A DNA stretch of 64,000 nt, from the sequence record NC_071015.1. One strand, given 5' to 3'. This document shows, in pieces, positions 46,460-63,162 of this stretch. Position numbers and translations under genes: made by a program. A model generated the notes under the pieces. The model saw nothing but the letters and a program-made list of their open reading frames with translations. It ran no database searches and was not told the origin of the DNA. How positions within the stretch are numbered: the stretch's first letter is position 1; each line of letters opens with the position of its first letter.

Positions 46460-46463
46460 ACAG

Positions 46464-46505: not shown

Positions 46506-46518
46506 TCATTCTTCAGGA

Positions 46519-47220
46519 TTAAATAAAGTTATCGTAAACATTTTCAATACGAGCATGAAGTTCAGTAAAATCTTTACTCATAACCGTTATAGAAGAAAGC
46601 TTGCGTTCTTCGTCTGGGGTAACGTGTTTAACTTTGGCATCGATGCCGTCCAGAAGTTTATAGAGTTCTTTTCGGCTAGCACCAAAGGCTCGACTGATTT
46701 GACTCTCTATTTTGCTGGCTTCTTTATTGACATCTGTCTGTTTAAGCAATGCCAAGAGCTCGTCCATCTTATCGGTCACTTGACGGATATCGACCTGAAT
46801 ATTCAGGAAACCCTCGACATCCAAATTAGTGATTCTTTCCGCAATTTGCTCATATTGCGGTTTTAAATTCTCAATCGCTTTCTCGACGCCAGGGATCTTC
46901 TCCGATACTTCTTTGACCCTTTCGTGGTCTTCTTTATTGGAGTTCACTGGGCCAGCTTTCTTGAAAGACTTTCTTCCCTTTCCTGTAAGAAAATCCCGAA
47001 TAGCCCTGATCACTTTAATGATCCACTCTTTGACATTGGATGCCCCGCGTTTAATGGAATCCAAGAACCCTTCCTGGCCTGCTACCGCCCCAAAATCTGC
47101 AGCATGCAGCTTCAGGACCGCATAGGCATAGCGCCCATCTGAGTTCAACGGTCTTCCACTGTTGATGTTCTCGCAACCCGCTAACATCGTAGCAAAGTGC
47201 TCTACTTCTCCGAATGACAT
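46519..47220 (-). CDS. Head protein paralog family member 1 (conserved FGEVEH...AGQE|GFLD leader)
   Basis: MSFGEVEHFATMLAGCE...YAVLKLHA...AGQEGFLDSIKRGA. Confidence 0.7.
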   Translation of the reverse strand: MSFGEVEHFATMLAGCENINSGRPLNSDGRYAYAVLKLHAADFGAVAGQEGFLDSIKRGASNVKEWIIKVIRAIRDFLTGKGRKSFKKAGPVNSNKEDHERVKEVSEKIPGVEKAIENLKPQYEQIAERITNLDVEGFLNIQVDIRQVTDKMDELLALLKQTDVNKEASKIESQISRAFGASRKELYKLLDGIDAKVKHVTPDEERKLSSITVMSKDFTELHARIENVYDNFI

Positions 47221-47251
47221 ATCGTCCCCTAATTAAAAGAATATAACAAAA

Positions 47252-47284
47252 GATCCTACTCTCCTTAACGGGAGAGTAGGGATC
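47252..47284 (-). terminator. Terminator hairpin
   Basis: CCTACTCTCC-6nt-GGAGAGTAGG with GATC flanks, then TTTTG on the minus strand. Confidence 0.7.
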
Positions 47285-47286
47285 AA

Positions 47287-47940
47287 TTAGAACTTAAGGA
47301 AACTGTCAAGATAGTTCAGATACGTACGCATAGAGCGAATGATGTAATCCTCATGAAGACGGAAATCATCACTGGTCACAGTGGACCAACGCATCATACG
47401 TTCTTCACTACAGAGATCCTTGGTCAGCGTATCCAGATCGACATTAAGATAATCAATCCATTCACACGCTTCCACTTCAGACCACTGATCTTCCGTTACC
47501 ATCGTCTTTTGATTAGAATAGAAGATGGTCATCAAACGGGCAACCGCACGACGCAGATATACCTGACGTTCGATCTTATCGCTCAGAGTAGTTTCACTCA
47601 ATTTGACCGAAGTCTCTTTGATGTACTCGGCGATATTGGTCATGATTAACAGACGAGCCTTTTTCAGAGCATCGTTATAACCGTTGGTGATATCGTGACC
47701 TTCAATGAAGGAACGCGTTTCAAATGCGTTTCGTTCGGTTTTGGTTGATGCCAACGTAATGGCCAGCACTTCTTTGCCGGACACGTTAGGCAGGTTGAAG
47801 ATCTCGTCAATGAATGCCAAACAACCTTTCTTACAACGCGGCTCCCGAGTAAACGTATGAACGTAATCCAGGAACTTATTGTATTTAGTTTGGTCAATCA
47901 AGAGCTGATCTAACAACGCAAAGATTTCTTCTTTTTGCAT
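47287..47940 (-). CDS. Hypothetical protein
   Basis: 217 aa helical ORF. Confidence 0.45.
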   Translation of the reverse strand: MQKEEIFALLDQLLIDQTKYNKFLDYVHTFTREPRCKKGCLAFIDEIFNLPNVSGKEVLAITLASTKTERNAFETRSFIEGHDITNGYNDALKKARLLIMTNIAEYIKETSVKLSETTLSDKIERQVYLRRAVARLMTIFYSNQKTMVTEDQWSEVEACEWIDYLNVDLDTLTKDLCSEERMMRWSTVTSDDFRLHEDYIIRSMRTYLNYLDSFLKF

Positions 47941-47942
47941 GA

Positions 47943-49523
47943 TTAAATCCTGTTGTTCACACCGAGCACTTTCAGACCGGCGTTGATACGATCGATGATC
48001 TTAAAGTTCTTTTTGATCTCGTCGTAACGTGCCCGCTGAGACATTAAGACCATACCGAGTGTCGGATGAGCATTTATGAACAGGTTGTCGTAATTGACAT
48101 GCATCGAAGTAGAATACTGTTCACCTTTATCATTATACTCACCTACGGCTTTCTGTGCTTTTTCATTCAGCACTTCCTGCTCAGCAGCAATCATCGTTTT
48201 CAGATCTTTGCTGATGTAAGCAAGCATGAGTTTATCAACTTTGTTGGTCCAGTTGATAATTCCGGCAATGCTACGACGAATCTGTCCGGTCACCGTAATC
48301 AGGTATTCCAGAGCAGCGGTGTATTCGCTGATGCTGGCACTGTAAGACGTGTAAGACATCTTCAGAACACCTACGTTCTCAAATACCGCATCCACACGCT
48401 CAATCAGTTCAGCGTCTTTTACATCGATCACATCTTTCAATGCACTCAATGTAGCTTCGTCAAACCGATCACGTGAGGCGCGCAGCAGAATACGAGGAAG
48501 AAGCTTGGCCGATTTACGAACACGCTCATAATCGTTTTCACTGACTTTGACGGAACTCATCGCAGACAGCTGTTCACGTTGCTGACGCAGGTTATCTTTA
48601 AAACCTTTATCCAGTCCAACGTTACCCAGATCGATCCCGTAGATCTCATCCAGAAGCTTGACGAGCTTATCACGGAGTGGAGCTGGGTTTAGGTTGTTGG
48701 CCACTTCATCATCGAGGGTGGCTCGGAATTCAATAACATCCGCGTTGCTGAAGTTTTCTTTATCTGCAAAAGCTTTGCGAAGTTTCGCTGCTGCTGCCTG
48801 ATAGCGACCACGAGACTGACGTGCCAGGTTCCCTGCTTTTAAGATCTCGTCTTCAGCTTCTTCCAGTGCCTTACTGGCTTTAGTTAAAGATTCAATTTGA
48901 TCCATTGCAGATTTGTTTTTGTTCTGAACGATAGTGAACGCTTCAATGGAGCTCAAGTTACCCGGCAGGGCAGCATAGAGTTCTTCCACATCGAGATTGA
49001 TCGGTTCAGAACCGGCAACATTGCCCAGTACCAGCGCCAGATCTTTTTTCACATCGTCAGAAAGCTCTGCCACGATCTTAAGTTCTTTTTCGGTCTTCTC
49101 AAACCCTAACAGCGTTTTGACTTTGAGAATCACCCAATCGATCACCGCAATCACAAAACGTTTGACCGCTTTAATGATGGTAACAAACCCAGCCTTCAAT
49201 GCGCTAAGGAATGACTCCGCACCTTTATATGCGTTGAACCGATCGTACCCGGGAACTAGCCCTTCCATCCCACCAATCTTCAGTGCAGAGAAGACAGCGG
49301 GGTGAAGGCGTTCGGTTTGGAGATATTGGCGGCAGTTTGCTGCCAGAATTTGAATGGATTCCTGGCCGGTCACTTCATACACTTCATCAAGAGAAACGTA
49401 TTCGGTGCCTTCATCATCACGGGCTACAACAGACACTTTATCTGTTGACGTATGAGGGCCAAGCTGAACAACAGTGCTCAGCTCAATAGAATCGCCATCG
49501 GTCTGTTTATCTTCATCGGCCAT
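47943..49523 (-). CDS. Internal head protein (large, processed)
   Basis: 526 aa; TGQE|S, GGME|G, KGAE|SF sites, then SFLSALKAGFVTIIKAVKRFVIAVIDWV helix. Confidence 0.6.
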   Translation of the reverse strand: MADEDKQTDGDSIELSTVVQLGPHTSTDKVSVVARDDEGTEYVSLDEVYEVTGQESIQILAANCRQYLQTERLHPAVFSALKIGGMEGLVPGYDRFNAYKGAESFLSALKAGFVTIIKAVKRFVIAVIDWVILKVKTLLGFEKTEKELKIVAELSDDVKKDLALVLGNVAGSEPINLDVEELYAALPGNLSSIEAFTIVQNKNKSAMDQIESLTKASKALEEAEDEILKAGNLARQSRGRYQAAAAKLRKAFADKENFSNADVIEFRATLDDEVANNLNPAPLRDKLVKLLDEIYGIDLGNVGLDKGFKDNLRQQREQLSAMSSVKVSENDYERVRKSAKLLPRILLRASRDRFDEATLSALKDVIDVKDAELIERVDAVFENVGVLKMSYTSYSASISEYTAALEYLITVTGQIRRSIAGIINWTNKVDKLMLAYISKDLKTMIAAEQEVLNEKAQKAVGEYNDKGEQYSTSMHVNYDNLFINAHPTLGMVLMSQRARYDEIKKNFKIIDRINAGLKVLGVNNRI

Positions 49524-49535
49524 GACGATTTCCTA

Positions 49536-49973
49536 TTAAACGATTTGGTTGGTTTCGGTGAATTTCTGAAGCTTGCGGTTCGCTTCATCAATCAGGATCT
49601 GCACCAGTGCGGAATAACTTTCCAGCTTGGTATAATCTTTCTCGCCTTCGGTCTCAACACGCGGGGTGATTTTAATCACTACCACGTCATCGACCAGCGT
49701 GCTGTTCAGCACCTGCTGAAGGTTACGGAAGAACTGACCCACCTGGGACATCACCATGTTACCGTTAACCGGGGTGACTTCATTCCAGTAAGACAGAATG
49801 TAACGGTTAAAGTTAATGCAGGTCTGCTCGTCCAGCTTGTTAGCGCCGTTGACGGTGAGCAGCGCTTTAGTGTACGCAGTTTGGGCGATATCAATATGCT
49901 GCTGCGGGTGAAGAATGCCTTCTTGAATCAGGCTTTCTTTGAGTTTTACAATATGGGCTAAATGGCTCATCAT
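49536..49973 (-). CDS. Small conserved head-module protein
   Basis: 145 aa. Confidence 0.45.
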   Translation of the reverse strand: MMSHLAHIVKLKESLIQEGILHPQQHIDIAQTAYTKALLTVNGANKLDEQTCINFNRYILSYWNEVTPVNGNMVMSQVGQFFRNLQQVLNSTLVDDVVVIKITPRVETEGEKDYTKLESYSALVQILIDEANRKLQKFTETNQIV

Positions 49974-49979
49974 GAATCC

Positions 49980-51314
49980 TTAAAATGCATCTTTATAAAG
50001 TGACAAAGTATGACCCAGCAACTCGTCGGTGTAGTTTTCGAAATCCTGGGCACGGAAATCGTTGCCGGAGCTTAACCAGCCGAACACGCGCTGAACTGCG
50101 GTCCCTTCCAGGAAAGGCTTGTTATCATCAAGCATCTTTTCGATCTCTTTGGCATCTGCCAAAAGTTTGATCTTGTCGCGCTTGTCACCGCCTTTCATTT
50201 CATTCAGCTGAACAATATGATCACGCAGAATTGTTTTCAAACGACGGTAGCGAGAATCGTACATGTCATTCGGAAGCAATTTATTCTGGAAGAATACGTT
50301 TATGTAAAATAAACTGAAAAGCCCACCGACGATCATCAGTGCCGGGCTCATTGCAGCCCACCCAATAATGGCGATATTCAACCAGGCAGCGGACATTCCT
50401 GCAAAAAGCAGACTGCCGGTCGGAATAGCAGCTAAAGCCGCTACCAGGGACTTACCACAACCCATACGCACAGAGTAAAGATCGGCATAAATCTCAGAAG
50501 AACGATCTTGAGTTCCAAGAGATAACGTACGGCGCATATCACGCGTATTGATCGCTTTATTAAAATAGATAACAAGCTGGTCACCGGTCATGTTAACCAC
50601 ATCTTCTTCTTTGACCGGCTGAGAAACTTCCATCAGCTTGAACGCCTCTTTAATAATATCAACGCGTTGTTTGCCGTAAATTTTTCCGGCCACGATCATT
50701 TTCATGGCAGTGGTAGAAACCAGCGGATCGACAATAGTGCGGTAGATAGACAAGAAGCCAGTAAAGACATGGCCGCACTCATGAATAAGAATGCCAGCCA
50801 GCGCTTCCGACATGGTAACTTTGTAACGTTCAACAATTTTGTATCTGATGAAGTTACTGATGTAGTGGTTCATGTAAAGACGGAACGGAATCTTGCTGAA
50901 ATCCCCACCGACCATACCGGTAGAAGTATCGACCCAGCCTTTAAGCACATCGGTCTTCATGGCTTTGAACGCTTGACCAATGTTTGTCTGGCTTGCACTG
51001 AACCAGTTTTCCAGACCTTTAATATTGATCACGTTGTTTGGGCTGAACCAACCGGCTTCAACAGCAGCATTCCCAACACTCTCTTCTTGAAGTTCAAGCA
51101 AAATGCCGGTGTGTTTCATAAAGATGACTTTTAAAGCTTCAGCGCTATTTTCGCGATCTTTTAAATGCCAGGTATGGTTATCATTCACCAACTCGGTATC
51201 AAAGTAACGAACAAGGTCGTGAAACAAATCACCTTTTTGATAATCCATGAACTCTAACCCGCCCACTTCCACTTGGAAGTTCTTAGGTTTGTTCAGGAAA
51301 GTGATGTCTAACAT
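49980..51314 (-). CDS. phiKZ gp84-like protein with zincin HExxH motif and TM hairpin (M48-like metalloprotease candidate)
   Basis: ILIHECGH; downstream SEIYADLYSVRMG..SLVAAL; hydrophobic stretch SLLFAGMSAAWLNIAIIG..LMIVGGLFSLFYINVFF. Confidence 0.55.
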   Translation of the reverse strand: MLDITFLNKPKNFQVEVGGLEFMDYQKGDLFHDLVRYFDTELVNDNHTWHLKDRENSAEALKVIFMKHTGILLELQEESVGNAAVEAGWFSPNNVINIKGLENWFSASQTNIGQAFKAMKTDVLKGWVDTSTGMVGGDFSKIPFRLYMNHYISNFIRYKIVERYKVTMSEALAGILIHECGHVFTGFLSIYRTIVDPLVSTTAMKMIVAGKIYGKQRVDIIKEAFKLMEVSQPVKEEDVVNMTGDQLVIYFNKAINTRDMRRTLSLGTQDRSSEIYADLYSVRMGCGKSLVAALAAIPTGSLLFAGMSAAWLNIAIIGWAAMSPALMIVGGLFSLFYINVFFQNKLLPNDMYDSRYRRLKTILRDHIVQLNEMKGGDKRDKIKLLADAKEIEKMLDDNKPFLEGTAVQRVFGWLSSGNDFRAQDFENYTDELLGHTLSLYKDAF

Positions 51315-51369
51315 GTTTCTCTCCGGAGTAAAATAAAAGGGCAGGTTAAATAGTGTAGCAAAATTAACC

Positions 51370-51383
51370 TTATGACGTCATAA
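51370..51383. promoter_or_regulatory. Palindrome TTATGACGTCATAA carrying TATG on both strands
   Basis: Perfect 14-bp palindrome in the divergent spacer between the HExxH gene and the DNA polymerase gene. Confidence 0.45.
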
Positions 51384-51397
51384 CATTCGGGTGCAGA

Positions 51398-53161
51398 ATG
51401 AAGATATATAAGAACGAAAGTCCCATTGTTGGGCGGGTGTGTAAGCACGCTTATCTTTCATTTAGTAAATTCAGTTCAGATCATGACCTGCTTACAGCAA
51501 AGATTACCAACATTCATGAAGACGGGACACGTAGTCATAAACTGGTTCAAGTTGAAGACTTCAAACGCGACTTCTATATTGTCAAGAAGAAACATCAAGG
51601 TTTCAAAGACAAACGCGACTATATTGAAATCGCCAAGTGTGATAAATACAGTTCCAATGAATCGCGTCTGGCATTAAACATCAGTAAAATTCTCTTTGGT
51701 CGTCCAGATCGTAAAGCGCAATTAAACGAATTAAAGAACAACCCGTATGTGTTTGGTTGCCAAGAAACCGTGCCGGTCATATATAAAGAAAGGTTTTATA
51801 AAAGATATCCTGACTATCAACCGCAAGAAGCGTATGAAGTTGGGGCGTACGACGTTGAAACCTATATCAACGATGACGGTGGTGTTGGGTGTGTCAACAT
51901 GGCATCCACCACCCACAAAGATTACGCGTTCTGGGCTGGAATCCGTTCGTACTTCCCTGTGGAGGATCAGAAAGATGACGCCATCATTCTGCGTAAACTG
52001 AAAGAAGCTGAGAAGAAGTATCTGCAAGAGTACATCGATAAGCATGGCGTTACGATCGATTACAACCTGGTAGATACTCCCGGTCAAGTAGTTTATGAGA
52101 ACATTCAGTATTGGCATCGATCCAACATCGACTTCATTGTTAGCTGGAATGCCAACTTTGATATGGAACGTAACCAGGAAGCTCTGAAGAACGAAGGGTA
52201 CGACTTAGCACGTACTTACAGTGATCCTGAGATTCCGGATGCCTATAAAGATTATTACTATTTCCCGGGTCGTCAATTTAAGACCAAGGTTGATGGTACC
52301 CAGTCTCCGTTAGAACCACAGGAACGTTTTCCGGTTGTTCAGGCACCTGCTCGCTGGCAGTGGTTTGACGGCATGTCCTTCTATGCTATCAAACGTGCGC
52401 CGATGGGCAAGAAAGAATCGTACTCTTTGCAGGCAACTGCCGAATCTGAAAAAATTCAAGGTAAGCTTTATATTCCAGAAGCGGATCATCTCCAAGCAGG
52501 TTCTGCAGAATGGCACAAATTCATGGTGCGCAACTATCCGTATGAATACGTCATGTATAACATTCGCGATAACTGGACCATTGAAGATTTGAACCGTCAG
52601 ACTAATGACTATTCATTATCACTGCCGTCTCTGGTAACGTCTTCTGAACTGAAGTCTTATCAGTCTCAACCGTCCATGATCTCCGATAAGCTTTCCTTCA
52701 TTGCGATGGAACATGGTTATGTCTGGGGAACTGTTGGGCGTAGAAAAGAAGATGTTTGGAAAGAGATTAAACCGGATCTGCGCGACTGGATTGCTCTGTT
52801 GCATGCTGAGCTTAATGAAGATAAAGGCAAAGCGATTTATGCTGGACTTCCATCTTGGCGTTCACGTGGTCGTGGTGATACAGATGACATCGACGTGACT
52901 GGTGCTTATCCACACATCACCGTAAGTCTGAATGTCTCTAACAAAACCACCAAACTGGAAGTGTGTGAGATTGAAGGGCTGGATCGTTTCGAGTTCCGTC
53001 GAGTGGGTGTGAACTACGCGTCGTCTCCTGTCGCGAATGCCACTACTCTGTGCAATACCATCTTCGGTATGCCACAACTGACAGACATTAACTCGTTCTA
53101 CGAAGAGTCTGTCATTCCATTCATTAATGAAGCAAAAGAAGAACTAAAGAAAGCCGCATAA
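51398..53161 (+). CDS. Split family-B DNA polymerase, exonuclease/motif-A subunit (phiKZ gp82-like)
   Basis: ExoI YDVET, ExoII WNANFD, ExoIII YNIRD; palm motif A DIDVTGAYP near the C-terminus; motifs B and C not seen. Confidence 0.85.
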   Translation: MKIYKNESPIVGRVCKHAYLSFSKFSSDHDLLTAKITNIHEDGTRSHKLVQVEDFKRDFYIVKKKHQGFKDKRDYIEIAKCDKYSSNESRLALNISKILFGRPDRKAQLNELKNNPYVFGCQETVPVIYKERFYKRYPDYQPQEAYEVGAYDVETYINDDGGVGCVNMASTTHKDYAFWAGIRSYFPVEDQKDDAIILRKLKEAEKKYLQEYIDKHGVTIDYNLVDTPGQVVYENIQYWHRSNIDFIVSWNANFDMERNQEALKNEGYDLARTYSDPEIPDAYKDYYYFPGRQFKTKVDGTQSPLEPQERFPVVQAPARWQWFDGMSFYAIKRAPMGKKESYSLQATAESEKIQGKLYIPEADHLQAGSAEWHKFMVRNYPYEYVMYNIRDNWTIEDLNRQTNDYSLSLPSLVTSSELKSYQSQPSMISDKLSFIAMEHGYVWGTVGRRKEDVWKEIKPDLRDWIALLHAELNEDKGKAIYAGLPSWRSRGRGDTDDIDVTGAYPHITVSLNVSNKTTKLEVCEIEGLDRFEFRRVGVNYASSPVANATTLCNTIFGMPQLTDINSFYEESVIPFINEAKEELKKAA

Positions 53162-53199
53162 TAAAAACTCTACTCTCCTTTTGGGAGAGTAGAGTTATG
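53157..53199. terminator. Bidirectional hairpin flanked by CATA/TATG
   Basis: AACTCTACTCTCC-TTTTG-GGAGAGTAGAGTT. Confidence 0.75.
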
Positions 53200-53206
53200 C
53201 TATTTA

Positions 53207-53929
53207 TCATTTACCACGAACCGCTGTGACCACAATTCGATCCGCAGCTAAAATAGTTTTATGAGCAATGCTCACAACTTCTGATACCGCAGTCAAAACT
53301 TTGGTAGCGTATACCGCAAGTTTCTCATCCACAGCACCGCTTGTGAATGCTGATTTAATATTATCAGCCTGTTTATTAACCTGATCCAGCATCTTCAATC
53401 CACCCAGCTCATTCAAATAAGTGGTGGCTGAATTATTACTGAAATTCCCTTCGGCCTGTTCAATGAATTTCTCCATTGTCTTGACATAGTTATCAAAATC
53501 AAACGCAATGCGTGGTGCGTTACTTAATTCAGATACCAAATCGCTGTCATGCAGGTTTTCAAATATCTTTAATTTTGCTTTTAATTGATCTGCACTTTTC
53601 TTGTACAAATCGGCGAGCGCCGAAACATCGGAAATATTAACTGAGTTAGCGGTCTCCCCGGCTTTTGATTCTTTAATCTTGCGTTTGCTGCCAGTGACAA
53701 ATTCCACAATGGCTTTAAGCAATTTTAAACACCATTCTTTAACCGACTGTGCACCTTTTTTGACACTGTCCAAAAAGCTTTCATTGCCAGCGTAAATGCC
53801 CATGTCATTAGCATGAAGCTTCAATACGCTAAAAGCATACTTGGCATCTAAGGAATTTACATCGCCTTGATTAATACTTTCGCACCCAGATACCATGGTT
53901 GCAAAATGTTCAACTTCTCCAAAACTCAT
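53207..53929 (-). CDS. Head protein paralog family member 2
   Basis: MSFGEVEHFATMVSGCE...AGNE|SFLDSVKKGA. Confidence 0.7.
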   Translation of the reverse strand: MSFGEVEHFATMVSGCESINQGDVNSLDAKYAFSVLKLHANDMGIYAGNESFLDSVKKGAQSVKEWCLKLLKAIVEFVTGSKRKIKESKAGETANSVNISDVSALADLYKKSADQLKAKLKIFENLHDSDLVSELSNAPRIAFDFDNYVKTMEKFIEQAEGNFSNNSATTYLNELGGLKMLDQVNKQADNIKSAFTSGAVDEKLAVYATKVLTAVSEVVSIAHKTILAADRIVVTAVRGK

Positions 53930-53941
53930 TTTTTAATACCT

Positions 53942-54727
53942 CTAATTAATGGCTTTTTCCATCCGCTCTTGATCTTTCTTAAGGAAGCTAGCAAACGCTT
54001 TGCTAAGACTAGCATAAACCTCAGTGTACACTTTTAATAAACGAGCACCTGCATTCAGCTGTCGATCTCTTTCTCTGGCCTCCTGGCTATTGTCATCGCT
54101 TATGCGAATCCTTTTTGCATGATTACTGCAAGACAGATTTAAACTGAATAACGCTGTGTCGTAATCATTCAGTTTATCTTTGATCCAGTTTATTTCACTG
54201 CGATCGAAGTCTTCTGGTTTGCATGTTTCGATGTGCCGGATAATGTCATCAACAATATGACCCGATGAAAGATATCTAAATTTTTCTACTGACAATTCTA
54301 AATAGTCCGCGAAAGTAAAAAAGTCATCAGAGTCTTTTATTGGTTCCATCTTACCTTGCGCCACGGTAAGAGCGTGCATCATACTTTCTTTCAACATCTC
54401 ATAACGCTTAGCGCGATTGGCTTCTTTATCCGTTTCTAACTTCTCGTTTGCTTTATCCGCTTCTTCCCAAAACTTACGTTCTCGCTCAAAACGTCTACGA
54501 CCAAAGCTAAGGAAGTCTTTGATGGCTTCACACAAACTTATGAAGAATTCCTTTATCTTTCCTGCAGCAGCTTTGACTGTATCCAGAAACCCTTCGTTTC
54601 CAGCGTGAGAATATAACTTCAATACCGCATAGCTGTATTTGCCATCAGGGGTAATCCTACCACCGCTTGTCAATGATTCACATCCTGACACCATCGTGGC
54701 TAAGTGTTCGATCTCTCCAAGACTCAT
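53942..54727 (-). CDS. Head protein paralog family member 3
   Basis: Start moved to ATG 54727; MSLGEIEHLATMVSGCE...AGNE|GFLDTVK. Confidence 0.7.
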   Translation of the reverse strand: MSLGEIEHLATMVSGCESLTSGGRITPDGKYSYAVLKLYSHAGNEGFLDTVKAAAGKIKEFFISLCEAIKDFLSFGRRRFERERKFWEEADKANEKLETDKEANRAKRYEMLKESMMHALTVAQGKMEPIKDSDDFFTFADYLELSVEKFRYLSSGHIVDDIIRHIETCKPEDFDRSEINWIKDKLNDYDTALFSLNLSCSNHAKRIRISDDNSQEARERDRQLNAGARLLKVYTEVYASLSKAFASFLKKDQERMEKAIN

Positions 54728-54763
54728 TTCTGTTCCTCTAATATGGGCATATGACAAAGAATC

Positions 54764-54789
54764 CCTTTACCCCTTTATTGGGGTAAAGG
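54764..54789 (-). terminator. Terminator hairpin
   Basis: CCTTTACCCC-TTTATT-GGGGTAAAGG. Confidence 0.65.
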
Positions 54790-54803
54790 AATAATATCAT
54801 TTA

Positions 54804-55550
54804 TTATTTATTTCCGACGGTTCGATCATACACATCGTTGAGTCTTTTAGCGATACGCTCAATACGTTCCGCACGCACAGCACAAGCCTTTAAAAGTTTT
54901 CCGGCAAGTTTGACCGCACCGGTATCTTGATCGGATTCAAAGACATGCTGTTTTACATATCGTTCTACTGCTTCTGCGGTATAATTGGTACGTGTACCAA
55001 GTTTGGCGCATTTATAAACCAGCTTGTTAATCTTTCTGAGATCAAATACACCGTCTTTAGTGTGCTCGCCCAATTGTTTAAAATTGGCAATGTCTTCTTT
55101 AATTCCATCCCCATTGATGTGGAATAAAGAACAAGCGGATTCAAAACTGGGATCGTTCACAATCTCTTCCAAATGCTGGGTGTCGTTTGCTGCGTATTCC
55201 ATCAAACTTTCCATCTGGAATTGAACATCAAGAGACAGTTTTGAATAATCTTCTTCAGACATCTTTTCGATATCTAATACTACCTTTTCAATCTCTTTTT
55301 CTTTCTTGGAGCCTTTAAACCAGTTGCGGATAGCCTGAATAAGTTTAAGGATCCATTCCTTAACGTTATTCGCACCACGTTTAATGGAATCCAGGAAGCC
55401 TTCCTGACCGGCATACAAACCAGCGTCGTTAGCGTGGAGCTTTAATACTGATAGAGCGTATTTTGCATCAGTATTAGTCGTATTTCCGTTACTGATGCTT
55501 TCACAGCCAGACAACATTGTAGCAAAGTGTTCTACTTCTCCGAATGACAT
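54804..55550 (-). CDS. Head protein paralog family member 4
   Basis: Start moved to ATG 55550 (GAGG RBS); MSFGEVEHFATMLSGCE...AGQE|GFLDSIKRGA. Confidence 0.7.
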   Translation of the reverse strand: MSFGEVEHFATMLSGCESISNGNTTNTDAKYALSVLKLHANDAGLYAGQEGFLDSIKRGANNVKEWILKLIQAIRNWFKGSKKEKEIEKVVLDIEKMSEEDYSKLSLDVQFQMESLMEYAANDTQHLEEIVNDPSFESACSLFHINGDGIKEDIANFKQLGEHTKDGVFDLRKINKLVYKCAKLGTRTNYTAEAVERYVKQHVFESDQDTGAVKLAGKLLKACAVRAERIERIAKRLNDVYDRTVGNK

Positions 55551-55557
55551 ATTTACC

Positions 55558-56559
55558 TCAACTTGATTTTTTAACGACAGCACTTACCTGGAATCCGGAA
55601 ATACCTTTTTCTCGCAGATAATCATAGACAGTGGCTTGGTGCATCAAACGTTTTTTGCTAAAGTTACTTTGAAGCCACGCATTCGCCATGGAATAATAAT
55701 CTTCATCCCATTTCGTTTTATCGGTTTCTATGTCCAATGAAAGAGTGGTAACCTCATATTCATCAAACACATCAGGGGCTTTATTTTCCACATACTTAAC
55801 ATTTTCTTTCCAGTCGGCAATGGTTAATCGATTGCTCTCCAGTGCGGCCATCAAGCTTGATTGCAAATACGATCGACCTTTATTTTCATTGATTGCTTTT
55901 GAAACTAATGAATCAATAGGAACGCTCCCTGTTGAACTGCTAATAACTTTAACAATCCCAGCTAATCCTTCGGACAAGATTTTGATACCCTTCCCTAAGG
56001 CAACGGCTTGTTTATTATCGTTTTCATTATTTTTAGATAATTTATCGACAATTTTTGTAAGCCCATCAATGGATTTTTTAACGCTTTCGTTGAACGAATC
56101 CAAATCTTTTCCGGCGTTTGAATTCTCTTTCTTTAATTTATCAATAAGGGATTCTCCATCTGCAATTAAAAAAGAGAATTTAATATTAGCGTTAAGTTGA
56201 GATTCATCAATAGTTTTTATCTCAGAAATCAAATGTTCTATCTTTTTAATGAGACCTTCGGATTTCTCCGCGACATTGATCGTCGCACCAGGCTTTTTAC
56301 CTGTAATTTTATTTACAACATTACGAATCCAATCCATGACAGCCCGAGCAAGTTTCTTAACCCACTCTACAATTGACATTGCCCCTCGTTTAACCGAATC
56401 GAGAAACCCTTCTTGCCCTGCATATAGACCGGCATCGTTCGCATGAAGCTTTAACACACTTATTGCATAACGACCATCGGGACTATTTACGTTGCCGTTG
56501 TTAATACTTTCACAGCCGGACAACATGGTACTAAAATGCTCAACTTCCCCAAAGTTCAT
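55558..56559 (-). CDS. Head protein paralog family member 5, with extra C-terminal domain
   Basis: Start moved to ATG 56559; MNFGEVEHFSTMLSGCE...AGQE|GFLD; later AALE|S followed by a W-D-E-D-Y...NFS domain. Confidence 0.7.
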   Translation of the reverse strand: MNFGEVEHFSTMLSGCESINNGNVNSPDGRYAISVLKLHANDAGLYAGQEGFLDSVKRGAMSIVEWVKKLARAVMDWIRNVVNKITGKKPGATINVAEKSEGLIKKIEHLISEIKTIDESQLNANIKFSFLIADGESLIDKLKKENSNAGKDLDSFNESVKKSIDGLTKIVDKLSKNNENDNKQAVALGKGIKILSEGLAGIVKVISSSTGSVPIDSLVSKAINENKGRSYLQSSLMAALESNRLTIADWKENVKYVENKAPDVFDEYEVTTLSLDIETDKTKWDEDYYSMANAWLQSNFSKKRLMHQATVYDYLREKGISGFQVSAVVKKSS

Positions 56560-56600
56560 CTTTTTATTCCTCTTGACAAAATAAATATAACAAAAGATCC

Positions 56601-56626
56601 CTCCTACTCCCCGAAGAGAGTAGGAG
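56601..56626 (-). terminator. Terminator hairpin
   Basis: CTCCTACTC-8nt-GAGTAGGAG, then GGATCTTTTG on the minus strand. Confidence 0.65.
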
Positions 56627-56633
56627 GAGATCA

Positions 56634-57173
56634 TTAACCGTACACGTAGTTATGCAGGCGCTGTTTGGCAACCGGACTGAACATGTTTTCGAACTTAACC
56701 ATGTCGTAGTTTTCCAGGAAGCGGCGCTTGTCACGGGCGTTCTCACTGTACATGACAATGAACAGCATGAAACGTTTGTAACGCAACACTTCTTCGCTTG
56801 GCAGGCTGGATTCGAGCGGGAACAGCGGAGCTACGATGTTGTCGTAGCTGAACAGGTTCGGGCTTTCCGAGATGGTCACCACGAAGTGATCCAGGATCGC
56901 CTTTACCTGTGCATCGTTAAGTTCCAGAGCACCCCAAATGGTGCGCATGAAATCACGCTGAAGTACTTTACGTGTTTCCAGATCACCAGTAACAGTCCCA
57001 GCCAGGAAATCACGGAACCCATCGATACCTTGTTTATAGATATCAACCACATCGGTCGTGGGTTTCTGAGTTGCCACTTTCATGCTGGTATCAAGCGTAG
57101 CTTCAGCAGTAACCTGCTCGTCTACGGCGTTGACACGTTTTTCAATTTTCGGTGTAGTGAACTTGTCACTCAT
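56634..57173 (-). CDS. Conserved hypothetical protein
   Basis: 179 aa, GAGGA RBS. Confidence 0.55.
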   Translation of the reverse strand: MSDKFTTPKIEKRVNAVDEQVTAEATLDTSMKVATQKPTTDVVDIYKQGIDGFRDFLAGTVTGDLETRKVLQRDFMRTIWGALELNDAQVKAILDHFVVTISESPNLFSYDNIVAPLFPLESSLPSEEVLRYKRFMLFIVMYSENARDKRRFLENYDMVKFENMFSPVAKQRLHNYVYG

Positions 57174-57185
57174 CGCTTAGTCCTC

Positions 57186-57668
57186 TTATTGTTTACCGTT
57201 TTGGGCTTTGCTCTTTTCAGCGGCCGCAAGTTTATCGGCGATCTTCTTCTTCTCAATGAGAAGATCTTCGGTACCACGGTTGATACCTTCCAAAATATCC
57301 TCAATATGCGTGATTGGCATATCCAGGTAATCTTTCACGGTTAAGAATTTTTCATACTCTCTAAACCCGAAGGCGTATCCGAAACCTTTCGCGGAGAAGA
57401 TGTGAGCAAAATCCCTTCTCTGGTGATTGTACTTGATGTGATTAGAAAGGGGTTCTTTCTCATTCACATGTCCGTACATCATCATCACAATACGCCGTTC
57501 CAGAATAGCTTGCTTAATAGGGTCTTTTTCATTTGCCCCTTCTATAAAGAGCTGAAGGGCTCGATCTAAAAGGGGCGCTGAAACTTGATCTTCCCGTCTT
57601 AGGAAAGAGTTTCCTCTACTGTGCTCGCTGCTTCGGTTCTGATACCAATCATCATTCGGGTTCGGTCT
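57186..57668 (-). CDS. Downstream ORF probably reached by -1 frameshift from the 57599-59209 gene (or a 100-aa protein from GTG 57488)
   Basis: Frame is open upstream of GTG 57488 to about 57740 with no ATG/GTG/TTG; the extension (APLLDRALQLFIEGANEKDPIKQAILERRI) looks protein-like. Confidence 0.5.
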   Translation of the reverse strand, partial: RPNPNDDWYQNRSSEHSRGNSFLRREDQVSAPLLDRALQLFIEGANEKDPIKQAILERRIVMMMYGHVNEKEPLSNHIKYNHQRRDFAHIFSAKGFGYAFGFREYEKFLTVKDYLDMPITHIEDILEGINRGTEDLLIEKKKIADKLAAAEKSKAQNGKQ

Positions 57669-59209
57669 AAAAAATTTAGAATCGGATCGACCGGTGTAAA
57701 CCCAGACAAGCGAGAAGCGCTCACTGAATCGTTTTCTTTCTTACAGGCCGGACAGACGTTGTTCATAATCCCCACAAATGTGTAGGTCATACGAGGAGCC
57801 AACGTGATCACTTTTTCCAGCGCAGAGAAGTACACTTCTTCGTCTTCGTTGAAGATATCAATCAGACCTTCGCTAAAGCCCTCTGGATCTTCTTCACGCG
57901 TGATCGTCTTGATCTCGGTATCTTCGGTACCCGGCTCTGGCAGCTCTTCATACAGACGGAACCAGTGCATGTATTCGTGCCCACGCAGGCTGGCCAGATA
58001 TTCACGACGTTTGGTTCGGAAGACGTCCATGTTCGGGAACTGAATTGCCAGCTCACGCAGTTCAGGGTTAATACGTTCCGCCATCATTTCATAACAACGG
58101 AAATATTCTTCCAGAGACGGAACCCCCAAGACGATGCGAGAACCGGTGTTACCCAGGTCACAGGTCAGATCCAACGGTTCACCGTTTTCATCCACATACA
58201 CCGGAGCGTATTTGGCCAACTCTTCACGGGACAGCTTACGTCCGTTAGAGGTGATCTCAAAGAGAATGTTGCGGCGTTCTTCCGGCATGGCATTTTCGAG
58301 AGTCAGTACCATACTGGCTGGATCGATGATGATCACTTCGGAGTGTTTGCACTCATTGGCCAGGCAATAGGTACGATACGCTACCCCTTTCGGTGCACTG
58401 ATTGCTAACAGCGCCATGGCGATATGTTCTAAATCGTTAACTTTGATGTAACGTTTCAGTTCATAGTGGTCAGCCACATCTTTCACGCTGTGATAAGACA
58501 GACGATCAAGAATGAAGTTCACCAGAATCTGAGAAATACCGGCGCGCTCCAAGTGGATGGAGGTAACGTTATAACGCTCTCCGTATTGACGCAGTTTGGT
58601 AGACACGTCGTTGATCAGACGAATCAGATCTGACGGGGTCGGAATCTTCACGCGCAGAACGATCAGGGAGTTAAGCAGGACGATAGTGAAACTGTCCGGG
58701 GCATGAACCGCTGCACGGAAGTTGCGACGCATACGAGAGCGCACGTCAAGCTTGCTGTCCGGTTTCGGTGTCACGGACTGAATCAGACCCAGACGCAGAT
58801 CGCCTTTGGCCGGTACGGTATTCACCCAGCCCGTACGTTCAACCAGGGAAACGTTATCAGAACGCATCAGATGACGGTCAGTATACGCATAAAGGAAACG
58901 CGTATAGTTGATCAGCATCGGGATCAGTTCGTCGTAATCCATGCCTTTGAAGTGCTCATCGGCCAGGGTATCGAAGTTGAGCTTGAGGGCGTTAACGTCC
59001 CGTGTCTCTTTACCTTTATCCGCAGCTTCTTGTGCTTGTTGCCAAGCCATATACGATACTGCGGTCCGGTAGATTACCTTGTGTACTTCTTCGGCTGTTC
59101 CTAAGAACATAGGAAGAATGGCAACTTCATCGCTGGTTCCGGATCCCAGAACCATATCACGCAGCGCGTTGGTCAGATCCGGCTGCGGATCTTTTTGTTC
59201 TTCAGACAT
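57599..59209 (-). CDS. Conserved phiKZ-like protein with Cys-pair motifs; possible tail/baseplate assembly chaperone
   Basis: 536 aa from ATG 59209 (AAGGAA RBS); CLANEC and CPAC motifs; ends DPILNFLDR... Confidence 0.5.
   Translation of the reverse strand: MSEEQKDPQPDLTNALRDMVLGSGTSDEVAILPMFLGTAEEVHKVIYRTAVSYMAWQQAQEAADKGKETRDVNALKLNFDTLADEHFKGMDYDELIPMLINYTRFLYAYTDRHLMRSDNVSLVERTGWVNTVPAKGDLRLGLIQSVTPKPDSKLDVRSRMRRNFRAAVHAPDSFTIVLLNSLIVLRVKIPTPSDLIRLINDVSTKLRQYGERYNVTSIHLERAGISQILVNFILDRLSYHSVKDVADHYELKRYIKVNDLEHIAMALLAISAPKGVAYRTYCLANECKHSEVIIIDPASMVLTLENAMPEERRNILFEITSNGRKLSREELAKYAPVYVDENGEPLDLTCDLGNTGSRIVLGVPSLEEYFRCYEMMAERINPELRELAIQFPNMDVFRTKRREYLASLRGHEYMHWFRLYEELPEPGTEDTEIKTITREEDPEGFSEGLIDIFNEDEEVYFSALEKVITLAPRMTYTFVGIMNNVCPACKKENDSVSASRLSGFTPVDPILNFLDRTRMMIGIRTEAASTVEETLS
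57668..57677 (-). other. Candidate -1 ribosomal slippery site A AAT TTT TTA
   Basis: In-frame codons AAT TTT TTA (N-F-L) give X XXY YYZ twice (A AAT TTT and T TTT TTA); the -1 frame is the 57186 ORF. Confidence 0.55.
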
Positions 59210-59239
59210 CAATAGTTCCTTTATAAAGGAGTGAATGAA

Positions 59240-59968
59240 TTATTGTGCAACAGCTTCGGCAGACTCTTCAGGTTGAGTCGCTTCTGGTTTTGGTTCCAGT
59301 TCGTTTTCCGTGTGAACGCGAGACAGGTAGTCATAAGAAATGGCTTCCAGTACCTTGACGGTCTTCTCACTTTCAGAAAGTTCACCGTCCACATCTTCAC
59401 GCAGACGGGCCAGGGTATCTTCCACTACCAGGGCGTGTGGTTCAGCACGGGTAACTTCGACGTACAGCTCTTCAGCAAAGTTCTGAATAGTAGTACCGAT
59501 GTCCAGGCATTCGGTAGCCACGACTTCTTCCTGTTCAGCTTTCAGCAGCGGTTGCAGACGAGAGACGCGGTTGTCGATCAGGAACAGCTCAAGCGCGATG
59601 GCTTTGAGGTCGAGCACCAAAGTATGCTCGATGATCTTTTTCTCGATCATGCCGTTCAGCAGAGCGACATAAGAGAAGAGTTTGAACACTTCTCCAATAT
59701 TACGCTTCAATCCATCGATCATGTCTTGCGGAGATTTAAACTCCGTGTCTGTCGCCGGCTGGGTACCTTTATTGATCTGTCGTACCGCATTGCCCAGTAC
59801 AGAATCAAAGTCAAGCTGTTGGGCACCGAGCTTACGGGCTAAGCGGCGGTTCTCACGGTTGGCAACCGCAGACGGAGCTGCACGACCTTTCGCATTGCTG
59901 ATGCTTTTTTGCTTAGCACGAGCGTTGCGTTTCTGGGCACGTTTCTGAACAGAATTTTTGTTGGACAT
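59240..59968 (-). CDS. Hypothetical protein with highly basic N-terminal arm
   Basis: MSNKNSVQKRAQKRNARAKQK...RENRRLARKLG, then an acidic helical body. Confidence 0.55.
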   Translation of the reverse strand: MSNKNSVQKRAQKRNARAKQKSISNAKGRAAPSAVANRENRRLARKLGAQQLDFDSVLGNAVRQINKGTQPATDTEFKSPQDMIDGLKRNIGEVFKLFSYVALLNGMIEKKIIEHTLVLDLKAIALELFLIDNRVSRLQPLLKAEQEEVVATECLDIGTTIQNFAEELYVEVTRAEPHALVVEDTLARLREDVDGELSESEKTVKVLEAISYDYLSRVHTENELEPKPEATQPEESAEAVAQ

Positions 59969-60003
59969 TTTATGACCCCTTTTAAAAATGATTAGGTAAA
60001 TCT

Positions 60004-60888
60004 ATGTCAGAGATAGTTGATCTTACTAACGTAGACTTAGGTGTAGAAAACTTGGGTGAGATGTGGGAGGATTTTATTGCTCGCTGCACTCCCGCACATG
60101 CTACACTATTCAATGAGTCGTACAATTTAATTGCACTGTCATTCCCTGACAGTTTTACCGACAGTACGTTAACCCACTTATTTATCGACGAAGGTTTGGA
60201 AACCTCGGAACTGATGGCACACGTGCGGTTACTCTTTATCAACTCCATTGTTGATGCGTTGCAGATAATGGGGATTATCATTGATAAAGACTATCTGGAA
60301 ATGAACAGTCTGGAAGAACTGAAAAACGTTCTTGATACCATCTTCTTGTTCGACGGCTTAACAGATCTCATTGGTCTGGTAGATGTCCTTAATAATGAAG
60401 AACTCGATTGCAAAGAGCGCTTCATCGAAGTTGTGCGTATGGTTCAGCCACAATACGACATGAGCAACATGGAAGACTACATCACGGATGTCAGTCCTAA
60501 TGTTATTCGCGGCATCTTGATCGGTTTGAACATTATCGATGAGGATGACACCGAACATGTGGATCACACTCTCAAACAGAGGATTCGTGCTAACCGACTT
60601 TTCTTAGCTGAAACGTTTGCGGGTCAGCATATCCAAAACGGCGGTGGTGTTGGTCAAGTGGTGGATGCATATATGCGTCTTTTCATGAGCGATCTGGCAA
60701 AGCTTCTGGTAGAAGACAAGCTTAAGTATTTATCTAACGTGCTCTCCCTGCTGTTGATCTCATCCTTAAGTGACAATGAGATCAGCGGACAGTTCAGTGC
60801 GCTGGTAGAAGATCAGTGTAATGAGGTTGACGAACTGTACAAAGCGACCGCTCTTTTGAATAAGGTAAAACTCAATGCACAAGCTTGA
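60004..60888 (+). CDS. Conserved acidic protein co-transcribed with the virion RNAP subunit
   Basis: 294 aa; 14-nt overlap with the beta-prime fragment gene. Confidence 0.5.
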   Translation: MSEIVDLTNVDLGVENLGEMWEDFIARCTPAHATLFNESYNLIALSFPDSFTDSTLTHLFIDEGLETSELMAHVRLLFINSIVDALQIMGIIIDKDYLEMNSLEELKNVLDTIFLFDGLTDLIGLVDVLNNEELDCKERFIEVVRMVQPQYDMSNMEDYITDVSPNVIRGILIGLNIIDEDDTEHVDHTLKQRIRANRLFLAETFAGQHIQNGGGVGQVVDAYMRLFMSDLAKLLVEDKLKYLSNVLSLLLISSLSDNEISGQFSALVEDQCNEVDELYKATALLNKVKLNAQA

Positions 60889-62185
60889 TTACCTCTTTCT
60901 GGCTTTTAAAAACCGTGCCTATGTGCGCAAGACCTTTCTCATGTCGATCTTCAGTTTGGTACACGACACGCCAAACAACCGAAAGCTGTTAGAAAGTGTT
61001 CCGTACGCCGCTATCCGGGATAATGAGAAGAAAGAGATCTACTTCATTGATGAGAACAAAAACAAAGTGGTGATTGAAGGGTACGAGAACTTCAATGCTC
61101 CGTTGTTCAATAAAAATGAAAAGATCACCGTTGACATGCAGGCGCATGATTTCATCACAGAGAAACAAGAGACCACGGTTGGGATCTTCTTGGTGAACAT
61201 CGTGGTACTGTTTGAATCGTTCGGTAAACGCACGAACTATGTCAATGGTAAAATCGCCGGTGGAACCATTCAGGGACTGATTGACAGTCTGATGGCAGAT
61301 AACCCAACTCCAACCACTCCGTTACCGGAAGGAAAGGCGTCGGTTGATGAATGCTTGAATGTCACCAAACAGCTTGATTACCTGGAAGGGTTAAATCAGG
61401 TCTTTGTTAAGGCGTCTTCTCTTGACGTACTGACTGTTCACCCTGATGTTATTGCCCTGCGCGATAAACTCCTGAAGGAACTGGAAGAGCAAGGTAAACT
61501 GGAAGACCCTACAGCAGTTGCAGTAGCGATCGATCAGGTTATTGCACTGGATGCCAAAATCCAGTATGCCGGTCCCTCTAAAGATTTCTTCATTAACGGG
61601 AAGTTTATCGACAACGCCCGTAAGAAGATGTTCATCATCTTTGATATGGTTCCAGACTTTAATACCGGCAAATATCAGCTGCTCCGCAAATCTCTGGATG
61701 AAGGTTGGGATCCTGATCATTATCCAGAATACATCAACACCGCTATCTCAGCATCCTTCGACCGTGGTAACGCAACCGGGGAAGGTGGTGCAGAAGTAAA
61801 AGTAGCCATCCTGTTGACCAACCGTATTTTGATTGGTGGGGAAGACTGTGGAACCGTACGTACCGAACCTGTGCGGTTAAACAAGTTTAACTTCAAAGGG
61901 TGGATTGGTGGATATCACTTAGTGGACGGAACAGCTACCAAACTTACCAAAGCCGATGAAAGCCTCATTGGACAGACCGTTCAAATGCGTGTACCTCAGT
62001 ACTGTACTCAGGATGAAGGTAACTTATGTCGGACGTGTTGTGGGGAGAAGCTGGGAGCGATTAAAACCCGTGTAAGTGCTGAGGCAGTTTACATCTTTAC
62101 TCAATTCATGTTGACACGTATGAAAGCCATGCACGTTTCACAGCTGAAAACAATCACCATGTCATTAGAACAAATCGTACGATAA
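60875..62185 (+). CDS. Virion RNA polymerase beta-prime-like subunit (phiKZ gp80-like)
   Basis: Bridge-helix-like SFDRGNATGEGG..ILLTNRI..EDCGT; Zn site VPQYC..NLCRTCCG; trigger-loop-like TQFMLTRMKAMH. Confidence 0.85.
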   Translation: MHKLDYLFLAFKNRAYVRKTFLMSIFSLVHDTPNNRKLLESVPYAAIRDNEKKEIYFIDENKNKVVIEGYENFNAPLFNKNEKITVDMQAHDFITEKQETTVGIFLVNIVVLFESFGKRTNYVNGKIAGGTIQGLIDSLMADNPTPTTPLPEGKASVDECLNVTKQLDYLEGLNQVFVKASSLDVLTVHPDVIALRDKLLKELEEQGKLEDPTAVAVAIDQVIALDAKIQYAGPSKDFFINGKFIDNARKKMFIIFDMVPDFNTGKYQLLRKSLDEGWDPDHYPEYINTAISASFDRGNATGEGGAEVKVAILLTNRILIGGEDCGTVRTEPVRLNKFNFKGWIGGYHLVDGTATKLTKADESLIGQTVQMRVPQYCTQDEGNLCRTCCGEKLGAIKTRVSAEAVYIFTQFMLTRMKAMHVSQLKTITMSLEQIVR

Positions 62186-62186
62186 G

Positions 62187-62227
62187 CATAACCCTTACCC
62201 CTCCGCAAGGAAGGGTAAGGGAGTATG
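62187..62227. terminator. Bidirectional hairpin flanked by CATA/TATG; near-identical to 46464-46505
   Basis: CCCTTACCC-CTCCGCAAGGAA-GGGTAAGGG. Confidence 0.75.
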
Positions 62228-62232
62228 TTTAA

Positions 62233-63063
62233 TTACAGCTCAAATGCTGCATCGGACTTCATGAAGCTATCCAGGCCGCTCAGCATACGCTTATTCAGCG
62301 AGTTGTTTGCAGATTCCAGTTTGCCCATCAGCTCACCGTAACCGGTCATTTTCGGGGATACTGCGCTACCGATTTTGTTACGTTGTTCATCGGTGACATC
62401 TTGACGAGCAAAGGTGTACGCGTTCAGCTTGTCATTAAGTTGACCCATCTCAGCGGACAGGGCGGATTGTGAGCGAGCAAATGCGGCACCCACCCCCCAG
62501 ACGTTGGAGTTATCCGGGTCGGCATCTTTCAGCGCATCTTTCAGCAGTTTGATAACGTGATCCAGTTCTTTACTTTCGAACCCGATCTCTTTAAACGCTT
62601 CCCCACCCACTTGTTCCTTCAGGGCTTCGGCTTTAGCGATCAGACCTTTGATCCCTTCGCCCATACCGGACACAGCCTTGTCCATGTTTTTGTCCCACTC
62701 GGTACGCTTAGCGGGTTCTTTGGCGACGACTTCTTTTACTACTTTATCAGCTTTTGCTTTGATAGCTTTGGTTTCGTCTTCTTGTTCTTTAACCGTTTTC
62801 TTCTTCCCGGTCAAAAACTCTTTGATGGCTTTGATGAGTGCAGCTAACCACTCTTTCACTTTACCCGCCGTTTTCTTAACGCCGTCCAGGAAGCCCTCAT
62901 TACCGGCAACAGAACCCATGTCAGCCACATGCAGTTTCAGTACCGCATAAGCGTAGTTCCCATCAGAATTAAGTTGGGCCTTTCCGGACATTGCCAGATT
63001 AAGGTTTTCACACCCAGTCACCATCGTGGCTAAGTGTTCGATCTCTCCGAAGCATGCACTCAT
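62233..63063 (-). CDS. Head protein paralog family member 6
   Basis: Start moved to ATG 63063; MSACFGEIEHLATMVTGCE...YAYAVLKLH...AGNE|GFLDGVKK. Confidence 0.7.
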   Translation of the reverse strand: MSACFGEIEHLATMVTGCENLNLAMSGKAQLNSDGNYAYAVLKLHVADMGSVAGNEGFLDGVKKTAGKVKEWLAALIKAIKEFLTGKKKTVKEQEDETKAIKAKADKVVKEVVAKEPAKRTEWDKNMDKAVSGMGEGIKGLIAKAEALKEQVGGEAFKEIGFESKELDHVIKLLKDALKDADPDNSNVWGVGAAFARSQSALSAEMGQLNDKLNAYTFARQDVTDEQRNKIGSAVSPKMTGYGELMGKLESANNSLNKRMLSGLDSFMKSDAAFEL

Positions 63064-63130
63064 TATTATGATACCTTTTTTAACAGTTATAATGGACAAA
63101 AGATTGACAAAAAAAAATAATGATAGCTCG

Positions 63131-63157: not shown

Positions 63158-63162
63158 TTCTA

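Follow-up and report, generated by a model that had tools for sequence, protein, structure and literature searches.

The PF12699 paralogs of the phages SPN3US and phiKZ are abundant internal head proteins with long propeptides that are removed piecewise by the prohead protease (PMC5694885; PMC10052503). Their conserved N-termini in SPN3US were compared by the authors to the capsid targeting sequences of T4 (PMC5694885; PMC10052503). In nucleus-forming jumbo phages, proteins of the internal head and ejection class are abundant and poorly understood, and they are placed at the first step of infection. Six paralogous genes (gp098, gp104, gp105, gp106, gp107 and gp114) are described here from Kosakonia phage Kc263, within a stretch of 64,000 nucleotides (nt), referred to as the window, of record NC_071015.1/MZ348422 (window position = record position minus 62,000). 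Together with three genes elsewhere in the genome, they are likely to represent a divergent, short-propeptide branch of the phiKZ-type internal head proteins (PF12699; 'paralog family A' of SPN3US), which would be loaded and cleaved as proposed below.

The genome of Kc263 has 253,740 bp and belongs to the genus Branisovskavirus; the paper describing the phage reports a myovirus with a head of 96 nm. Because its record annotates a nuclear shell protein, the PhuZ tubulin and split multi-subunit RNA polymerases, Kc263 is a phiKZ-like, nucleus-forming jumbo phage. Its closest named relatives at the paralog loci are OBP, pEt-SU, AH04, Survivor, SXP01 and a group of Aeromonas phages. Window positions 46000-64000 match the Kc263 sequence at 100% identity, and no broken genes were found in the region.

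The N-terminal module and its cut sites

The original prediction had picked out six open reading frames by a common N-terminal motif, giving the low (stop-codon) end of each; all six exist, all are on the minus strand and all contain the motif. Two stand alone, gp098 (46519-47220; 233 amino acids, aa) and gp114 (62233-63063; 276 aa), the latter adjoining a virion RNA polymerase subunit gene. The others form a tandem array (53207-56559) that starts with gp107 (55558-56559; 333 aa), continues with gp106 (54804-55550; 248 aa from the ATG at 55550) and gp105 (53942-54727; 261 aa) and ends with gp104 (53207-53929; 240 aa). Six is the number of members in the window only: in a scan of the whole genome with a leader profile, nine genes have the full leader, these six plus gp057, gp200 and gp201, and three distant carriers of the core (gp086, gp100 and gp090) give weaker matches. 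Over the first ~86 aa, the six paralogs are 41-70% identical (BLASTP E 1e-25 to 1e-44), which rules out chance or low complexity as the origin of the shared motif, and their alignment contains 27 invariant columns, all inside the first 73 residues. At identical residues, codons agree in only 21-54% of cases. Synonymous agreement is thus near saturation, so that recent gene conversion can be discarded; the copies are old, and the leader has been maintained by selection on the protein.

Two motifs stand out in this block, an invariant A-G-x-E|(G/S)-F near residue 50 and a second invariant G-x-E near residue 17. The cut predicted at the first of these falls at residues 45-56 in the six genes and at 60-66 in gp201 and gp200. 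The predicted propeptide comprises residues 1-50 in gp098 (47071-47220; G-C-E at residue 17, A-G-Q-E|G-F at residue 50), gp104 (53780-53929), gp106 (55401-55550) and gp107 (56410-56559), residues 1-45 in gp105 (54593-54727) and residues 1-56 in gp114 (62896-63063). Across the family, x-G-x-E|(G/S)-F is kept in 151 of 168 members and the early G-x-E in 156 of 168. The middle residue varies (C, F, L or M at the early site; Q, T or N at the later one), and a free middle residue between a fixed G and a fixed E is the pattern expected of a P3-x-P1 protease motif. Within the window, nine module proteins account for 19 of the 30 occurrences of G-x-E-[SG], a density of 6.8 per 1000 aa as against 0.63 in its other annotated proteins (~11 times denser).

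The original prediction regarded the whole ~80-aa leader as a cleavable tag. Its kinship with a phiKZ-type propeptide stands, including a cut site that aligns with sites determined by mass spectrometry (see below), but the predicted removal is limited to the first 45-56 aa, which are acidic (net charge -2 to -11). A further ~35 conserved residues are predicted to stay on the mature protein, where they would make up a basic helix with pronounced amphipathic character (hydrophobic moment 0.54-0.80; net charge +3 to +6). As conservation reaches this far past the predicted cut, the block is not purely a disposable tag.

A search of 1.84 billion representative proteins with the leader profile returned 254 sequence clusters (50% identity, public data) at E<=1e-3, of which 142 reach E<=1e-10, defining a short-propeptide subfamily that Pfam misses at its threshold. 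In the same representative search, 19 separate stretches of protein P0121 (2761 aa) match the family profile, all of them in the tail part of that profile; rather than being a relative, P0121 is probably helical and repetitive.

The connection to known head proteins comes from several profile comparisons. Five of the six paralogs match PF12699 at 13.7-18.5 bits, in each case in the region of the cut site and the helix after it, while gp104 has no match. The cut-site Glu occupies position 92 of the PF12699 profile in gp098, gp105, gp106 and gp114. At E<=0.01, 56 of 66 family representatives match PF12699 (best E 9.2e-9), as opposed to at most four for any other family. Kc263 itself encodes a canonical phiKZ-type internal head protein, gp090 (36404-37651, minus strand; 415 aa; PF12699 at 87.6 bits), with G-x-E|S sites at residues 14, 78, 116 and 133, the last of which aligns with the cut site of the paralogs. 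When the family profile is aligned with gp090 orthologues and SPN3US gp53/54 (hhalign: 85.8% probability, E 5.3e-6, 89 columns), the family G-C-E falls on G-T-E78|S of gp090 and A-G-Q-E|G-F on A-G-I-E133|S-F. In an alignment of canonical members, E133 of gp090 shares a column with E125 of SPN3US gp53 and E137 of gp54, and E116 with E124 of gp54; all three SPN3US residues are cleavage sites found by mass spectrometry (PMC10052503). The genome also encodes an S80 prohead protease, gp222, outside the window (Peptidase_S80 at 236.6 bits, E 2.6e-70). On these profile comparisons, the N-terminal part of the paralogs shares homology with the phiKZ-type internal head proteins over three elements, their propeptide, cleavage site and first helix.

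Several points weigh against this assignment. None of the six paralogs reaches the Pfam gathering threshold for PF12699 (27 bits; observed 13.7-18.5), and SPN3US gp53/54 are not found significantly by a profile built from gp090 orthologues alone. The link therefore relies on two things, common membership of the Pfam family and the alignment of canonical members, in which the step from gp090 to SPN3US is a MAFFT alignment at ~20% identity with a local E-(S/G)-(F/W)-K-E-T match. Between the tails and the mature region of gp090 orthologues, profile comparison gives at most 1.1% probability, no higher than with reversed sequences. The P3 residue of the Kc263 sites is Gly, whereas the SPN3US protease prefers Ala; Gly is compatible only with the wider S/A/G-x-E motif reported for phiKZ in the literature. 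The papers on Kc263 and ZPAH34 contain no proteomics. In the phiKZ class, some members stay in the head and several are injected (bioRxiv 10.1101/2024.03.24.586471), so that ejection cannot be assumed for each Kc263 paralog. No phiKZ protein was returned as a direct match to the six genes, and the connection to phiKZ runs through the Pfam model and gp090.

Demonstrated paralogy, homology of the module to PF12699, conserved cut-site motifs, a protease gene, a predicted helical fold and distant relatedness of the tails underlie the favoured explanation, in which packaging, cleavage, head retention and ejection of the Kc263 paralogs would proceed by analogy with the known systems. Late in infection, each protein would be made with 45-66 aa of acidic propeptide at its N-terminus; this propeptide, with two predicted helices, would take it into the assembling prohead. 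There, gp222 would cut after the G-x-E near residue 17 and after the A-G-(Q/N)-E near residue 50, releasing the propeptide as two small pieces. The mature protein, consisting of the conserved basic amphipathic helix (G/S-F-L-D...K-E-W...) followed by a fast-evolving, all-helical bundle, would be retained in the head, contributing to the mass of internal protein that is packed along with the DNA. Some members would probably exit with the DNA at infection, as do phiKZ gp93/95/97.

The same cut sites could also fit core or scaffold proteins that act in assembly only, building the interior of the prohead and being degraded or expelled at maturation, so that the finished virion lacks them. Such a role would suit all-helical, coiled-coil-like proteins with more than one G-x-E site each, in a phage group where a scaffold protein is unconfirmed (PMC5694885). 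It is nevertheless very unlikely, given that the conserved cut sites are restricted to the first ~56 residues, that the tails contain few other [SAG]-x-E triplets, which are not conserved from one paralog to the next, and that the mature SPN3US gp53/54 and their phiKZ homologues stay in the virion at high copy number.

Other proteins in the window contain similar sites. The major capsid protein (23016-25166) has G-L-E91|S and gp071 (13135-15996) has G-L-E272|G, both candidate maturation sites; gp071 is annotated only as 'virion structural protein' and is homologous to the SPN3US portal gp81 (E 6e-11). These sites lie within ~4 and ~12 residues of the positions extrapolated from SPN3US ATE-130 and AQE-254, where the alignments stop short of the sites, and are only suggestive of further maturation sites. 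One N-terminal G-x-E|S site each is present in gp089 (35226-36302), gp091 (37690-38640), gp092 (38630-39892; S-G-N-E|S-F) and gp095 (41277-42413; Y-A-G-A-E|S-F), making these four possible substrates of the protease; the module profile does not detect them. Outside the window, gp045 ('polynucleotide kinase', record 41809-43482) was considered as a core carrier and rejected, since its weak match (E 0.004) grew on iteration and is probably a self-reinforced false positive.

Bodies attached to the module

Apart from gp090, two distant carriers show the module on other proteins. gp086 (33298-34137, minus strand; 279 aa) has an N-terminal module with A-G-T-E at residue 57. gp100 (47943-49523, minus strand; 526 aa), of the virion structural protein family phrog_14541, carries the module at residues 55-147, with three invariant G-x-E sites (residues 55, 87 and 103); the module of the gp100 family aligns with PF12699 members at 93.2% probability (E 3e-7). 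Since the module thus occurs in gp086 and the gp100 family, and on tails unlike the gp090 body, one targeting and cleavage module, as defined by these profiles, serves several head-protein families of Kc263. This bears out part of the modular loading system envisaged in the original prediction; the part that does not stand is that the remainders are unrelated to one another. The counterpart of gp100 in pEt-SU, pETSU_042 (L018:25717-27282), is annotated as 'tail length tape measure protein'; this name is probably wrong, because the protein belongs to the head-protein family phrog_14541 and carries the module of internal head proteins.

Beyond the leader, the six paralogs were originally described as diverging completely. 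By BLASTP this holds, the best pairwise E between their tails being 0.017, and the leader-less tails of 166 family members fall into 35 BLAST clusters, with each Kc263 paralog in a cluster of its own except gp200 and gp201, which share one. Profiles of the tail clusters nevertheless reveal links: 19 of 190 pairs exceed 50% probability and four exceed 90%, while with reversed targets 0 of 190 exceed 50% and the maximum is 21.6%. The tail of gp114 is linked with those of gp200/201 (93%), gp107 (84%) and gp098 (79.5%), and a link to gp105 reaches 68.5%; the tails of gp104 and gp106 show no link by sequence in this comparison. Unrelated C-termini are thereby ruled out for most members.

The AlphaFold2 models of gp114 (predicted local distance difference test, pLDDT, 82.5; predicted template-modelling score, pTM, 0.74) and gp107 (pLDDT 78.7) are entirely helical, with the lowest confidence around the cut-site linker; gp107 has an additional helical C-terminal extension of ~90 aa. 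Every Foldseek match among predicted viral structures is a family member (pEt-SU, OBP, Aeromonas PS1 and Erwinia Joad/RisingSun). Paralogs whose tails differ are paired, as full-length models, at template-modelling (TM) scores of 0.52-0.68, including 0.65-0.68 to a 258-aa entry that, by length alone, is probably gp106. The tails, as modelled, are diverged, distantly related all-helical bundles. Structure prediction and Foldseek of the C-termini had been proposed with a single shared fold as the outcome that would speak against the original prediction, and all-helical bundles are, in part, that outcome. A fold search of the PDB gave a best E of only 0.17, and a sequence profile search of the PDB returned only designed helical bundles and apolipoproteins, with no solved relative. 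No enzymatic or effector domain was found in the six genes or in ten longer relatives; among these ten there was one weak, sub-threshold match to PF12699.

The tail types are also not young. Five of the six have distant counterparts in other phages (20-36% identity), the sixth, that of gp106, having only a near-identical copy on record, and these five therefore represent old, fast-evolving lineages and not recent acquisitions. The rapid payload turnover suggested from base composition is thus not borne out, while the composition itself was correctly noted: with a GC content of 0.394, the tandem array is AT-richer than its flanks and is the lowest 3.35-kb stretch of the window (mean 0.457, standard deviation 0.017). 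The most GC-rich part of the window (0.51-0.55) is the major capsid gene (23001-25000), a trend opposite to that of the paralog array.

These results bear on the idea that the leader is a portable address tag on unrelated effector cargoes with fast turnover, such as anti-defence or early-vesicle factors. In its favour are the sharp break in conservation between the N- and C-terminal parts, the presence of the module on at least three other bodies (gp090, gp100 and gp086) not detectably related to the bundle tails, the AT-rich array and a copy number that varies among relatives; moreover, phiKZ PF12699 paralogs are injected and located at the early infection vesicle (bioRxiv 10.1101/2024.03.24.586471). 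However, the tail-only profiles are linked far above the reversed-sequence control, the models of paralogs with different tails resemble one another, a known effector or enzymatic domain is absent from the six genes and the ten long family members, five tail types are old, and the conserved block is ~35 aa longer than the piece predicted to be cut off. Unrelated cargo is thus contradicted for most of the C-termini, and the explanation as a whole is unlikely.

A wider proposal treats the ~85-aa block as a portable capsid-address-and-release cassette that the OBP/Kc263 lineage would have put on at least four bodies without detectable relationship to one another (the nine bundle proteins, gp086, gp090 and gp100). 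In this view, the nine bundle proteins would enter the cell with the DNA, and the basic helix exposed by cleavage would enable them to act either on that DNA or at the early infection vesicle; conflict with the host would drive their diversification. This proposal is unlikely.

Helical composition has also given rise to names that point away from the head. In GenBank, gp104 is a 'putative apolipoprotein E', and the names apolipoprotein E, apolipoprotein A-I and apolipophorin-III, profile matches to apolipoprotein structures in the PDB and weak PHROG matches to tape-measure families (E 1e-4 to 4e-3) could suggest lipid- or membrane-binding, apolipoprotein-like proteins or tape-measure-like tail proteins unrelated to the head. 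In the same PDB search, however, designed helical bundles outrank the apolipoproteins, so the signal comes from helical composition, which explains the misleading names. ApoLp-III reaches 16.8 bits where Pfam sets the cut-off at 36.3, the best E of the PDB fold search is only 0.17, the PHROG matches are partial and lie over helical stretches, and the specific signal conserved in position is that of PF12699. Both identities were rejected as compositional, and a tail or lipid-binding role is extremely improbable; judged by its sequence, the name of gp104 reflects helical composition only.

Gene context and transcription units

The paralog genes are placed among head and virion genes, and their counterparts in pEt-SU and OBP occupy the same positions. 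Beside the virion RNA polymerase subunit gene, pEt-SU has three members, Kc263 one (gp114) and OBP one (OBP_089, at the position corresponding to gp114); beside the DNA polymerase gene, pEt-SU has three and Kc263 four. OBP_089 is annotated as 'putative virion structural protein', as are the counterparts N1M2_207 and that of ZPAH34. The comparison of copy number across related phages called for in the original prediction does reveal differences: a leader query in tblastn matches Kc263 at nine places and pEt-SU at seven, while other relatives have between one and four. In the literature, the number of PF12699 paralogs per phage is two to seven (PMC5694885); the twelve module carriers of Kc263 were counted by a broader criterion than in that study.

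For gp106, the record uses an upstream GTG start, giving 258 aa, of which the 10 extra residues are common to no paralog. The ATG at 55550 comes with a GAGG ribosome-binding site and is separated from gp107 by 7 nt, and all paralogs start with M-S-F-G-E; the annotated start is probably 10 codons too long.

Strong hairpins bound each transcription unit of the paralogs. Upstream of gp107, a terminator-like hairpin followed by TCTTTTGTTATAT (56599-56628, minus strand) marks the start of the gp107-gp106 unit, and between gp106 and gp105 lies another, followed by TCTTTGTCATAT (54761-54792, minus strand). A two-way hairpin (53166-53196) separates the end of the array at gp104 from the converging DNA polymerase gene. 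gp098 is preceded by a hairpin followed by TCTTTTGTTATAT (47255-47280, minus strand) and followed by a terminator-like hairpin (46472-46499, minus strand), and a terminator-like hairpin also lies downstream of gp114 (62192-62221, minus strand). The hairpins after gp098 and gp114 have an identical 18-nt core, CCCTTCCTTGCGGAGGGG, found nowhere else in the window, and their likeness is confined to the ~30-nt hairpin.

A hairpin followed by TCTTT(T)GT(T/C)ATAT recurs ~25-35 nt upstream of the starts of gp098, gp105 and gp107 (47240-47280, 54745-54792 and 56584-56628; minus strand), with a looser version upstream of gp114 (about 63095-63113, minus strand). This combination may be a terminator-promoter cassette. 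It is absent from gp104 and gp106, which suggests the two-gene units gp107-gp106 and gp105-gp104. The hairpins at 7737-7758, 47256-47279 and 53170-53192 have common arms, CTACTCTC...GAGAGTAG, for which 0 occurrences are expected by chance; by these arms, they form a repeated intergenic hairpin family.

Comparison with known internal head proteins

The internal head protein assignment, which remains the favoured one, extends a known system by a divergent, expanded branch and introduces no new kind of system. Genes named 'apolipoprotein' or hypothetical are re-labelled as probable internal head proteins, and their exact processing sites are predicted and can be checked by mass spectrometry of virions. 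The occurrence of one module in several head-protein families sharpens the question of how the head is loaded without a known scaffold protein.

The closest likeness is to gp53/gp54 of the Salmonella giant phage SPN3US, the highly abundant ejection proteins of 'paralog family A'. Like the Kc263 set, for which a head location is proposed by homology, these internal head proteins are paralogs whose N-termini are conserved while the remainders have diverged. The S80 prohead protease cuts their N-terminal propeptides after x-x-E and so removes them in several pieces, as predicted for Kc263. The SPN3US sites E|G-W-K-E-T and E|S-L-W share a column with E|S-F-K-E-T of gp090, which by profile corresponds to E|G-F-L-D of the family (PMC10052503). 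There are, however, clear differences. The propeptide has 45-66 aa in the Kc263 family and 125-137 aa in SPN3US, and P3 is Gly in the former and Ala in the latter. The mature body in Kc263 is a different, shorter helical bundle, diversified, unrecognised by Pfam and without detectable similarity to the PF12699 body. Kc263 has nine copies and three distant carriers, whereas SPN3US has two copies.

The inner-body proteins of phiKZ (gp92-gp95, gp97, gp162 and gp163; PF12699) are likewise clustered paralogs, and the set undergoes proteolysis in the course of packaging. Several of them enter the cell with the DNA and are located at the early infection vesicle (bioRxiv 10.1101/2024.03.24.586471). 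The two phages are alike in lifestyle, with a nuclear shell, PhuZ and a virion RNA polymerase. The T4 proteins IPI-III and Alt follow a similar principle: they reach the prohead core by means of an N-terminal peptide, lose this peptide when the prohead protease cuts behind a Glu, and are ejected in their mature form together with the DNA (PMC5694885). No sequence homology was detected between the T4 internal proteins and the Kc263 family, and the T4 tag comprises only 10-20 aa, whereas the conserved block of Kc263 continues past the predicted cut into the mature protein.

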